From the NCBI GenBank assembly GCA_021613535.1, contig CP075496.1, positions 11,842,001 to 11,906,000 on the forward strand: a DNA stretch of 64,000 nt, given 5' to 3'. The notes under the pieces are model-generated. The model had not been told where the DNA came from. It worked only from the letters and a program-made list of their open reading frames with translations, and searched no databases. The translations under genes and the position numbers were made by a program. Source of the stretch: Adineta vaga (Eukaryota > Animalia > Rotifera). Below are positions 41,978 through 44,900 of the stretch, one piece after another. How positions within the stretch are numbered: position 1 is the first letter of the stretch; the number at the start of each line of letters is the position of its first letter.

Positions 41978-44900
41978 ATGCGATATCTACAAATTCGACG
42001 GACACTCTACAGTCTAACTGGCAAATGGGTACATACTCTCTGACTTTGAACTATATAGAAAGTTTCGAGTTGTATATGAATATATTTGAAAAATATTTTC
42101 AAGTGATTAGAATTTGACTTCTTTCTTTTTCTAGCCAAAAAGCTCACCTATCGAACGTACTAAAGAAATTGAACGATATTGGATACCGAAATTATATGAT
42201 GAACATGAAAAATATCAAATAGATTCAGTAAGTTAATTTTTATCGACATTCATTTTACTTTTCGTTACTATTCTATAAAATGAAGAAGAATGAAAAAAAG
42301 CAGAAAATGTATGTTTTACCAATGTTTCCATATCCATCGGGTCGATTACATATGGGACATGTTCGAGTATATACATTGAGTGATACATTAGCGCGCTATT
42401 ATCGAATGCGAGGTTATCGTGTAAGTTAAAATATTTTTGTATAAAAATATTTATTTGTGCCTTTTTCTCATGGGGAAAAATATCATTAGGTTATACATTG
42501 TATGGGTTGGGATGCATTTGGTTTACCAGCGGAAAATGCAGCTTTTGAACGATCCGAAGAACCAATTGAATGGACCAAAAAGTAATTTATTTTCTTAGGA
42601 ACGAATAAAATTTAATATTTATTCTTCATATAGAAATATTGCGTACATGAAACAACAAATCAATCAACTTGCTTGTAATTTTGATTGGAAACGAGTACAT
42701 TCATTGACTTTTTCATGCACATTTCATTCTCATAGGAATTCTATTTAGGAAATCGCAACATGTGATCCAAATTATTATAGATGGACGCAATATATATTTC
42801 TTATGTTATATCATGAAGGATTAGTTTATCAAAAGAAGGTAAAAAGAAAAGAATTGAATAGAAATGAATTTCAATTTATGTTTTCATAGGCTGCAGTTAA
42901 TTGGGATCCTATTGATCAAACTGTTCTAGCTGATGAACAGATCGATGATGCTGGTCGGTCATGGCGATCTGGTGCAATTGTTGAGAAAAAATTCTTGAAA
43001 CAATGGTTTATTCGAACGCGTGCTTTTACACAGGTAATCCAGCCTACGCTAATTATTAATAGAAATGTGATGTGCAAAAATTGAATATTTGCGTCTTTAT
43101 TACATGAAATGTTAGTCATGCAAACGATCCTTTTTATTTACTCGAAAGATGCGAACTACTATTTTATTCCACCCACTTTGCTATATGTGTGAACAGAATA
43201 GATTAGTTTTTCTCTCGGAGTACGTGTAAGTATGTGTTTATTTTCTTGTTTTTCAACCTATTTCTATATTCTGCATCATTCTTATCTACGAGAAAATGAA
43301 GGCAAGAATACCTTGTCTTCTTATAATACTTATAAGTTTTGCACTTAACAAAACAAATGCTACACATGTAGCATTTTATTCAACGAAGACACCTTATAAA
43401 CCGCCATCATCCGAACTGATTATACCAATACCACCAGCAGATTATGAATTAGTATGTGCGCAGATTGTTGCTCGACATGGATCGCGAGCATTAGAAGGTC
43501 GAAAATATGATAGATTAACAATGTCATTATGGTTGCAAGCAAAAGAAGAAAATGCATTGACAGAATTGGGACGACAATTTGGTAACGATCTTCGATATTT
43601 TATTGATATCAATGATCAAATAGGGTTTGTTTTATTCTATTTCTCATCTGTATGTTTTTCTCTCTCATTTCAATCATTGAATAGACGTGGAGAGTTATCT
43701 GGACTTGGTAAACTCGAACAGCAAGGTCTTGCACATCGTTTAGCTGAACGTCTTCTACCATTATTCATCAATGGTCTACTACGTAATACTTCAAAAAGTA
43801 TTCAAGTTGTTAGTAGTAATAAAGCACGTTCAAAAGCAAGTTTAGAAGCATTTGTTCAAGGTTTACCACCTAGTGTTGCTTCTCTAATTGATTATGAATT
43901 ACCCAATCCAATTTTACTCTCGTTTCATGAAAATACGAAATATCAAACATATTTTAGGAAAGATAGACAATTAAAAAGTAAACTACGATCTATTGAAAGA
44001 CACCCGTATTCAAAAATAATGGCTCAAAATATTCTCGTCCAATTGTATCAACAATCATTTATTGATAGACTTGTAAATGGCCAATACTTTTTCATGGATT
44101 ATGAATCTGGAAAATCAATAAGAAATGAAGTTGATGCTGTTCGAATGCTTCATAGTCTTTATCTAATTGGTTCTAACTTACGCAAAGAAGGTGTTGGATC
44201 TTTACTTGAAAAGTATTTTTCTCCAAACCAATCAGCTTGGTTTGCTTATTTACAAGATACAAGAGTAAAGAATAGATTGAAAAAATATTCATACTATGAT
44301 TTCTATTTTTTAGGATTATTATGAAAAAGGACCGGGATTTTCTAATCGAACAATAACATATGATATGGCACAAGTCTTACTGGATGATTTCTTTCTCAAA
44401 TCAGATGAATGTTCACAAATAGATGCAACACATTTTCTTCGAGCACGTTTTGGACATGCAGAAGGCATTATTCCATTTGTTGCTCTACTTAAAATACCTA
44501 TTCTAAGCGACAAACAGACGCCCATCAATGAAACATATACATATGAAAATAATGCATGGCGTGGTGAAATAATTTCACCAATGTCAGCTAATATTCAATG
44601 GGAAATCTATCGACATCAGAATTATGGTAAAAGTGGTCGCATTGAATCTAATATAATATTAGTTCGAATGTTATTGAATGAACATATTGTTCCATTTAAA
44701 TATGAATGTGAACCATATAGTAGAGACTATATATTTTTTTATACCCTCGATGAACTAAAACGATGTTATAGTCTAACTAATCGTTAAGTTTTTGCCTTGT
44801 ATATAATCTTATGTGTGTGTGTGTTTGTGATGTTATGAAAATATAATATATTATGTTGTTTTGTTTGTTTTATTCTTAGTCACTCTATGACAATCTTGAT

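Follow-up and report, generated by a model that had tools for sequence, protein, structure and literature searches.

Introduction

Multiple inositol polyphosphate phosphatases (MINPPs), a subclass of the histidine phytases, are distinguished by a catalytic motif of the form RHGxRxh, not RHGxRxP, and by the proton-donor motif HAE in place of HD (PMC9432691). Bacterial phytases of this subclass that carry a U-loop have been described from Acinetobacter sp. AC1-2, whose soil enzyme shows the MINPP motifs RHGSRGL, HAE, PMAAN and LYNE (PMC9432691), and from Bifidobacterium longum (BlMINPP, PDB 6RXD-6RXG; PMC7762957). U-loops have been reported in bacterial MINPPs only, and the eukaryotic enzymes are called non-U-loop MINPPs (PMC7762957). 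Foreign genes are well documented in bdelloid rotifers, for example those for trehalose-6-phosphate synthase and trehalase in Adineta vaga (PMC4498783); no paper connecting bdelloids to a MINPP or a phytase was found. Here we describe a phosphatase gene that lies inside an intron of LARS2, the gene for a mitochondrial-type leucyl-tRNA synthetase (LeuRS), in a 64,000-nucleotide stretch of the A. vaga genome (contig CP075496.1, positions 11,842,001 to 11,906,000; called the window below, with positions counted from its first letter). The assembly that carries the window comprises 100.8 Mb in six contigs. An earlier reading of the letters of this stretch, referred to here as the original prediction, had proposed that the gene is of bacterial origin.

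Results

A complete gene within an intron of LARS2

The part of the window from 42274 to 46554 and beyond was recognised, exon by exon, as a gene for a bacterial-type (mitochondrial) LeuRS of the LARS2 kind (TIGR00396). Its introns measure 49-71 nt, with the single exception of one of 1846 nt (Table 1); the original prediction had placed the neighbouring introns at about 50-60 nt. Because the translations of the exons on either side of the large intron continue without a gap in LeuRS, we treat it as a single phase-0 intron, noting that the TIGR00396 map is coarse in this part. At three related loci (L095, L096 and L098, described below) the flanking exons are 90-94% identical in protein on the 5' side and 76-89% identical on the 3' side. 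Read from the sequence, retention of the large intron would end the LeuRS frame after 17 codons. The intron holds, on the same strand, a gene of three exons and 460 codons, as seen from the sequence and its open reading frames (ORFs). That a LARS2 intron of about 1.85 kb contains a complete gene with its own ATG, signal peptide, two GT-AG introns and stop had been claimed beforehand, and the sequence, the ORFs and the joints in RNA described next agree with it.

We compared 5001 bases (42200-47200) with the contigs of four public runs: X1 and X2, which belong to one study, X5, which belongs to a second, and X12. The runs X1, X2 and X5 behave as RNA in that their contigs are without every small LARS2 intron; the DNA run X12 gave no splice joint whatsoever over the same bases. 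In contigs of X1 and X2 both inner introns were removed (joints 43624/43685 and 44264/44314), and X5 contigs, which cover the second inner intron only, had it removed as well (44264/44314). The LARS2 joint 43033/44880, which skips the whole inner gene, was present in X1 and X2, with a shorter side of only 25-28 nt. Both mRNAs, that of LARS2 and that of the inner gene, exist; the host junction and the inner transcript, for which the original prediction had proposed looking in RNA, were both found, the latter as spliced contigs from two studies. In X12, contigs extend across the host/inner-gene boundary on either side (42608-43129 and 44626-45173), and the linkage of the two genes is therefore physical.

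The inner gene encodes a MINPP-type phosphatase

The inner gene was used in searches as two separate queries, the uninterrupted frame 43296-44264, which reads through intron 1, and exon 3 (44314-44784); for full-length comparisons, database proteins of other bdelloids served as queries. The frame 43296-44264 matched the Pfam family His_Phos_2 (PF00328) with 31.4 bits, against a cut-off of 23.6, and exons 2 and 3 taken alone scored 17.4 and 17.9 bits. Among solved structures, exon 3 matched the MINPP 7zgf with an E value of 1e-33 and the Bifidobacterium MINPPs 6rxd and 6rxf with about 1e-31, and no eukaryotic acid phosphatase or fungal phytase was matched. The motif RHGSRAL, the Arg of SSNKARS and the His of RFGHAE (44455-44457) align with the same residues in 7zgf and 6rxf. 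With RHGSRAL and HAE the rotifer protein belongs to the MINPP subclass as defined above, and its catalytic motifs are intact. Its PMSAN and LLNE each differ by one conservative change from PMAAN and LYNE, and orthologues show PMAAN, PMTAN and LYNE. The motifs quoted in the original prediction were all present in the protein, and the placing of the protein in the MINPP/phytase branch, made there from RHG and HAE, is in agreement with the Pfam match, the MINPP motifs and the solved MINPP relatives.

The U-loop of the inner protein, an insert in its alpha-domain, and the tetrapeptide DAVR that follows it align with EVSKKIKSEY and DAAM of 6rxf, and the loop has the length of the medium type found in Gram-negative bacteria (P0019, P0027). 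The Bacteroides-type protein P0149 is without 16 residues at this position. Exon 3 scored 37 bits (E 3e-8) against the Bacteroides type and 120 bits against the U-loop type. The N-terminus (MKAR, 13 residues and NKTNA) resembles a eukaryotic signal peptide; its counterparts in the bacterial homologues are signals of the Sec or lipoprotein type, and the mature protein begins, at FYSTKTPY, where those homologues begin theirs with Y(S/T)TKTPY. The C-terminus ends in ...CYSLTNR and, as had been noted before, has no endoplasmic reticulum (ER)-retention tail of the KDEL kind; such a tail is also absent from the orthologues, which end in ...IANR, ...LADR and ...IISR. From these features taken together, the product is predicted to be a MINPP-type phytase that is secreted and catalytically competent.

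The closest relatives are bacterial

An exhaustive HMMER search with exon 3 over 1.84 billion cluster representatives gave 257 matches. No non-bdelloid eukaryote was recognised among the best 150 representatives, most of which are without names. The non-rotifer full-length representatives that we inspected had bacterial-looking signal peptides or lipoboxes (a lipobox in 14 of the 89 full-length sequences), and no KDEL-like tail was seen among them. When one bacterial genome per species was surveyed with a profile built from a six-sequence alignment, more than 555 relatives were found that are 42-50% identical on exon 3, among them proteins of Streptomyces, Kitasatospora, Microbispora, Caulobacter, Tolumonas, Alkalilimnicola and Thalassolituus. 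The full-length protein P0022 of A. ricciae, used as query in a search with word-based candidate selection, gave 114 matches at E <= 1e-20; many of these are without names, and all the named ones are bdelloid or bacterial. Its best bacterial match was a protein from an Aeromonadaceae metagenome-assembled genome (E 7e-67; 34% identical along 93% of the query). Neighbours in the ESM Atlas, which we take as a lead only, were bacterial clusters throughout, and a profile of Bacteroides-type MINPPs found only bacteria among the 120 matches listed at E <= 1. In distribution, the family was seen in hundreds of bacterial species belonging to several phyla and, among eukaryotes, in bdelloids alone.

The nearest named relatives are Aeromonadaceae-like gammaproteobacteria. 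The original prediction had described the protein as more bacterial-like than animal-like, and the matches to bacterial MINPPs, the bacterial identity of all named non-rotifer relatives and the U-loop bear this out. Its more specific suggestion of a beta-proteobacterial or actinobacterial likeness held for actinobacteria only, the nearest named relatives being gammaproteobacteria (Aeromonadaceae/Tolumonas) and actinobacteria. An animal-type MINPP1 was not found in the genome with PF00328 and an exon-wise profile search of limited sensitivity. The UniRef name of the A. ricciae and R. sordida members is "Multiple inositol polyphosphate phosphatase 1".

In a tree of exon 3 (112 rows) the rotifer sequences formed one group, with a support of 89 in the Shimodaira-Hasegawa-like approximate likelihood ratio test (SH-aLRT), that comprised two well-supported subfamilies and lay within a clade supported at 97. 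In a full-length tree of 55 rows, in which the two pieces of the window gene were entered as separate rows, the rotifer clade had an SH-aLRT of 97 and lay within a 99-supported clade when the root was placed at the midpoint or on the Bacteroides type. This larger clade, with its gammaproteobacterial and actinobacterial sequences, includes Tolumonas, Thalassolituus, Alkalilimnicola, Streptomyces and Caulobacter. The placement of the rotifers was the same in an unfinished search under LG+F+G4.

The nested arrangement is conserved between genera

The same LARS2 intron with a gene of three exons on the same strand was found at L095 (28% GC), L096 (48% GC), L098 (37% GC) and L097 (Rotaria sordida); L096 and L098 come from one metagenome. 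In every genome compared, an ATG and a stop of its own and a conserved signal peptide are retained by the inner gene. In A. steineri, R. socialis and R. magnacalcarata nesting was judged from public gene models that contain both tRNA-synt_1 and His_Phos_2. The models P0295, P0296 and P0297 (R. socialis, R. magnacalcarata and A. steineri) are 653-657 residues long and consist of about 200 LeuRS residues and the phosphatase, and P0320 consists of the C-terminus of the phosphatase and the LeuRS editing domain. All of these are probably annotation artefacts of the nested layout. The arrangement is present in at least seven other bdelloid genomes and predates the split between Adineta and Rotaria; an examination of the orthologous intron, suggested in the original prediction, has thus revealed the same nested gene in each of these relatives. 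The ratio of nonsynonymous to synonymous substitution rates (dN/dS) between nested orthologues was 0.18-0.43, compared with 0.04-0.12 for the adjacent LARS2 exon.

The coding sequence of the inner gene is host-like in composition (GC 33%, with about 15% at third codon positions, GC3). The view that it is a domesticated gene which gained introns is in keeping with this composition, with the splicing of its introns and with its transcription. The genome has four members of the family, the copy in the LARS2 intron and those at C3:14.80 Mb, C3:14.97 Mb and C4:10.15 Mb (Table 1). Both introns are at the identical position and in the identical phase in L002 and L004, and hence in both rotifer subfamilies, which argues for one acquisition followed by intron gain and then by duplication. 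A comparison of the three paralogue loci with the window gave no synteny within +-10 kb, and the paralogues do not look nested. The nested copy may be the original insertion or a later copy from the four-member family.

Several members of the family show changes of their own. In L002 the HAE motif reads HAK and WRGE reads WRSE, and L002 may be a catalytically altered copy; P0022 of A. ricciae, which is nearest to L002, retains HAE. From its remaining pieces, L003 is probably a decayed copy. Compared with P0300 of A. ricciae, L004 has an apparent one-base frameshift in exon 2, which could mean that the copy is a pseudogene, that the assembly is in error or that a tiny intron is present, and its first ORF is without a clear signal peptide. 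At the R. sordida locus (L097:4573-6310, CAJNOH010003892.1) exon 2 of the phosphatase contains an in-frame stop, HAE is replaced by HGE, two residues are deleted ahead of WRG and the frame of a LARS2 exon is disturbed; the whole locus may be a second copy that is decaying. L096 (ENA ERZ26165376, a 3.29-Mb contig) is bdelloid-like and has 48% GC over its 12.9-kb locus, the other loci having 26-37%.

Possible sources of the inner mRNA

The 262 nt that separate the inner ATG from the LARS2 5' splice site have, in an alignment of five genomes (A3) that includes the one of 48% GC, a mean column identity of 69% and contain invariant blocks. The conserved blocks include ATTCC(A/G)CCCAC near 43166-43176, AATAGAATAGAT and GTACGTGTA. 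As this conservation exceeds expectation, the embedded protein being only 61-70% identical, we read the region as a candidate promoter or processing site. A long pyrimidine tract followed by AG at 43291-43292 ends 3 nt before the inner ATG and would suit spliced-leader trans-splicing, a process that bdelloids use. In the one comparison made (42200-47200), no loose contig ends were listed at this candidate acceptor. L104, an intron-free sequence of 1523 nt from JGI sample 3300002346, encodes a full 453-residue member of subfamily i. No LARS2 sequence flanks it, and it probably represents the transcript of an environmental rotifer. Its 70-nt leader shows no obvious spliced leader, as judged by eye and with no search made.

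Downstream of the inner gene, an AATATA-type element that is a candidate poly(A) signal (Table 1) stands 33-41 nt before the host 3' splice site, and only 84-105 nt separate the inner stop from that splice site in each genome. With the element so close to the host 3' splice site, the poly(A) site of the inner gene would fall in the host pyrimidine tract. We give an even chance to an inner mRNA made from its own promoter with its own poly(A) site. Processing of the inner mRNA out of the LARS2 primary transcript is possible and less favoured, and the remaining weight falls on both routes operating or on neither being settled.

Features of the locus and of related genes

Immediately upstream of LARS2 is an intronless-looking ORF for a GNAT acetyltransferase (41126-41731, plus strand). 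Its identity with the L096 and L098 counterparts is 72%, and since the ORF is also upstream of LARS2 there, micro-synteny at LARS2 is conserved; a gene model with an acetyltransferase domain is likewise upstream at L097. At 46076-46148 the RNA contigs skip 71 nt; the skipped stretch has the ends GT..CA, and the joint carries two additional letters (CT). Either the alignment is offset at a LARS2 intron here or the acceptor is non-canonical. A (TG)n tract in the 3' untranslated region of the inner gene, at 44811, is polymorphic in length, with eight extra bases (TGTGTGTG) in the DNA run X12, and RNA contigs tend to break there. The other PF00328 matches in the genome were PPIP5K (C1:6.09 and C4:6.94 Mb) and acid phosphatases of lysosomal and fungal types (Table 1). 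The latter form a separate histidine acid phosphatase family, which we take to be fungal-type (RHGS(V/I)Y...), and are candidates for further foreign genes; one of them is a single ORF of 444 codons without introns.

Table 1. Positions of the nested gene, its LARS2 host exons, its paralogues and other histidine acid phosphatase genes. Plain numbers are window positions.
Feature	Position	Strand	Remarks
LARS2 exon 5' of large intron	42890..43033	+	TIGR00396 positions 97-198; RNA-contig joints; ends in phase 0
Host intron	43034..44879	+	1846 nt; GT..AG; phase 0; RNA-contig joint in X1 and X2
LARS2 5' splice site to inner ATG	43034..43295	+	262 nt; candidate promoter or processing region
Inner exon 1	43296..43624	+	ATG 43296; signal peptide ~43296-43361; mature N-terminus FYSTKTPY; RHGSRAL 43473-43493
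Inner intron 1	43625..43684	+	60 nt; GT..AG; phase 2; in frame, no stop; joint in X1 and X2
Inner exon 2	43685..44264	+	alpha-domain; Arg in SSNKARS; U-loop ~44079-44132; DAVR 44133-44144
Inner intron 2	44265..44313	+	49 nt; GT..AG; phase 0; joint in X1, X2 and X5
Inner exon 3	44314..44787	+	HAE 44455-44463; PMSAN 44578-44592; LLNE 44671-44682; TAA 44785-44787
AATATA-type element	44838..44846	+	AAAATATAA; candidate poly(A) signal of inner gene; conserved in four genomes (A6)
LARS2 exon 3' of large intron	44880..44993	+	RNA-contig joints
Paralogue L002:485-1938	C3:14.80 Mb		intact three-exon frame; 74% identity on exon 3
Paralogue L003	C3:14.97 Mb		end of exon 2 and exon 3; weak upstream fragments
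Paralogue L004:1465-3197	C4:10.15 Mb	-	second subfamily; 52% identity; more bacterial-like: LRFAHAETIIPF
Lysosomal-type acid phosphatases	C3:12.21, C6:2.95, C4:9.06, C2:14.85 Mb		PF00328
Fungal-type phosphatase L092:1425-2759	C4:0.48 Mb	-	
Fungal-type phosphatase L094:738-1574	C2:15.49 Mb		tandem pair
Fungal-type phosphatase L103:1971-2444	C6:13.79 Mb		

Discussion

We consider it likely, with a probability of about 0.8, that the inner gene is a gene for a secreted MINPP-type phosphatase which derives from a bacterial U-loop MINPP, is nested in a LARS2 intron and has been kept across bdelloid genera. An ancestor of present bdelloids would have taken up the bacterial gene, which would then have become host-like in composition, come to have a signal peptide of the eukaryotic kind and two spliceosomal introns, and given rise to a small family by duplication. 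The direction of the transfer and its single origin are parts of this account that we infer. The protein would be secreted, probably into the gut lumen or to the outside of the animal, where it could free phosphate from food or detritus. It would hydrolyse phytate, along with other inositol polyphosphates, in the usual two steps, with His61 of RHGSRAL as nucleophile and the Glu of HAE as proton donor. The inner mRNA would be made from the conserved 262-nt upstream region and would end at the AATATA element before the host 3' splice site, and the LARS2 mRNA would be made by splicing the whole inner unit out.

A number of observations weigh against this account. The trees were quick posterior mean site frequency (PMSF) trees with SH-aLRT support only and no bootstraps, and they took in bdelloid and bacterial sequences and no animal, plant or fungal MINPPs. 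Rooting on the genome's own fungal-type acid phosphatases placed the root inside the rotifer sequences, and rooting on bacterial non-MINPP phosphatases gave a basal polytomy with the two rotifer subfamilies apart. The branch to the fungal-type outgroup is about 7.6 changes per site long, saturated and flagged for composition. The two distant-outgroup rootings conflict, and we judged both uninformative. Since the distant roots are unstable, the statement that the rotifer proteins are nested among bacteria depends on the U-loop and the taxonomic distribution, together with a root at the midpoint or on the Bacteroides type; bacterial origin rests jointly on distribution, level of similarity, U-loop and unrooted topology. 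No canonical MINPP1 was found in the genome that could serve as a separate, vertically inherited orthologue. Selection on the inner gene is purifying and fairly relaxed, with dN/dS reaching the upper value given above. Finally, one X2 contig (43004-44902) has the inner introns gone and both host exon/intron borders unspliced. Reads therefore cross the host borders unspliced, and an independent promoter of the inner gene is only one possibility; such a contig may come from a pre-mRNA or from a form that retains the intron, or may be a precursor of the inner mRNA.

If the gene were instead a fast-evolving bdelloid version of the animal MINPP1, inherited vertically, its likeness to bacterial proteins would reflect shared ancestry or convergence. 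The UniRef name, the failure to find another MINPP-type gene in the genome and the one outgroup root within the rotifer sequences would all suit such descent, which we nevertheless regard as very improbable. The protein has a U-loop and a DAAM-type motif, said to be absent from eukaryotic MINPPs, and has no ER-retention tail. It is 34-35% identical to bacterial proteins over the full length (E 1e-67), and no eukaryote other than bdelloids was found among the matches at E <= 1e-20 or the best 150 representatives. The Bacteroides type, described as the homologue of mammalian MINPP1, is far behind the U-loop type in score (37 versus 120 bits), and the rotifer-internal root comes from an AT-rich outgroup of the same genome on a saturated branch. 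The donor could also have been a fungus, a protist or another animal with a bacterial-type MINPP, or there could have been two acquisitions, one for each subfamily. Many cluster representatives are indeed metagenome proteins without names, and the subfamilies stand apart in one rooted tree. However, the named matches include no non-bdelloid eukaryote and the unnamed neighbours have bacterial signal peptides or lipoboxes, and two acquisitions are hard to reconcile with introns shared in position and phase by both subfamilies and with rotifer monophyly at SH-aLRT 89-97 in the trees without distant outgroups. We consider this group of possibilities improbable.

The public models that join LeuRS and phosphatase (P0295-P0297, P0320), together with the RNA contigs that are unspliced across both exon/intron borders, might suggest that the inner exons are alternative exons of LARS2 and that a LeuRS-phosphatase fusion protein is made. 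The models, however, use a GT within the LARS2 exon (after ...LKQ) and an acceptor within the signal-peptide part, so that the ATG and the hydrophobic core are lost. Their joint is absent among the A. vaga RNA joints listed, where the only joint from that part of LARS2 is 43033/44880. The inner gene has retained its own ATG, conserved signal peptide and stop, the retained intron closes the LeuRS frame after 17 codons, and stand-alone phosphatase paralogues exist. A fusion protein hence seems most improbable. The bacterial identity of the closest relatives is also what would be expected of a bacterial gene misplaced in an animal scaffold by contamination or misassembly, an explanation that is already refuted by the data: two spliceosomal introns are removed in RNA, GC and GC3 are host-like, independent DNA contigs span both borders, the same layout recurs in at least seven other assemblies, and the identity to any bacterium is at most 50%.

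Phytate is a large pool of organic phosphorus in soil, and animals are generally said to rely on microbial phytases. The nested gene would add the bacterial extracellular U-loop MINPP phytase, as an enzyme class, to the domesticated foreign genes of bdelloids, and points to phosphate release from phytate as a possible borrowed nutritional ability in an animal. Because no animal-type MINPP1 was found in the genome, the rotifer may have the bacterial enzyme as its sole MINPP. A joint proposal, in which this holds and the phytase mRNA is also produced from the LARS2 primary transcript by trans-splicing and by cleavage at the AATATA element, is more doubtful than not. If true, each LARS2 pre-mRNA would yield either a LeuRS or a phytase mRNA, an "operon inside an intron", and this operon-like layout would have been kept since the common ancestor of Adineta and Rotaria. 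As a clear and conserved example of a foreign gene on the same strand within an essential housekeeping gene, the locus is convenient for examining how a compact genome yields two mRNAs from one stretch of DNA. It also has a practical side: gene finders can miss an inner gene, and the public annotation of at least three bdelloid genomes fuses both genes into a chimeric "leucine-tRNA ligase", the UniRef name of P0295, P0296, P0297 and P0320.

How does the rotifer gene compare with the systems that are already known? With the bacterial U-loop MINPPs, including PDB 7ZGF, it shares membership of histidine phosphatase clade 2 and the RHGSRxh, HAE, PMAAN-like and LYNE-like motifs, as well as a medium U-loop followed by a DAAM-type tetrapeptide, Y(S/T)TKTPY after the signal peptide and a C-terminal ...ELKRCY; its exon 3 is 45-50% identical to theirs. 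It differs from them in its residence in an animal nucleus, its two spliceosomal introns, its eukaryotic signal peptide and its AT-rich codons, and about 10 residues are inserted into the last beta region of the protein. Phytase activity is, for the rotifer protein, a prediction only. The animal MINPP1, an ER-resident phosphatase of inositol hexakisphosphate and pentakisphosphate (InsP6/InsP5), is of the same subclass by name and by its RHG/HAE chemistry. Compared by description, it lacks the U-loop and is retained in the ER according to the literature, whereas the rotifer protein has a U-loop and no retention signal. With other foreign genes of bdelloids the inner gene has in common a bacterial affinity, acquired introns, host composition and expression. 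Unlike bdelloid foreign genes in general, it lies inside an essential host gene, at a position conserved between genera. The inner gene fits the known uptake of foreign genes by bdelloids, of which it is a well-kept and unsurprising case; notable points are that its place in the LARS2 intron is conserved, that public annotation models it as chimeras and that the genome apparently lacks an animal-type MINPP1.

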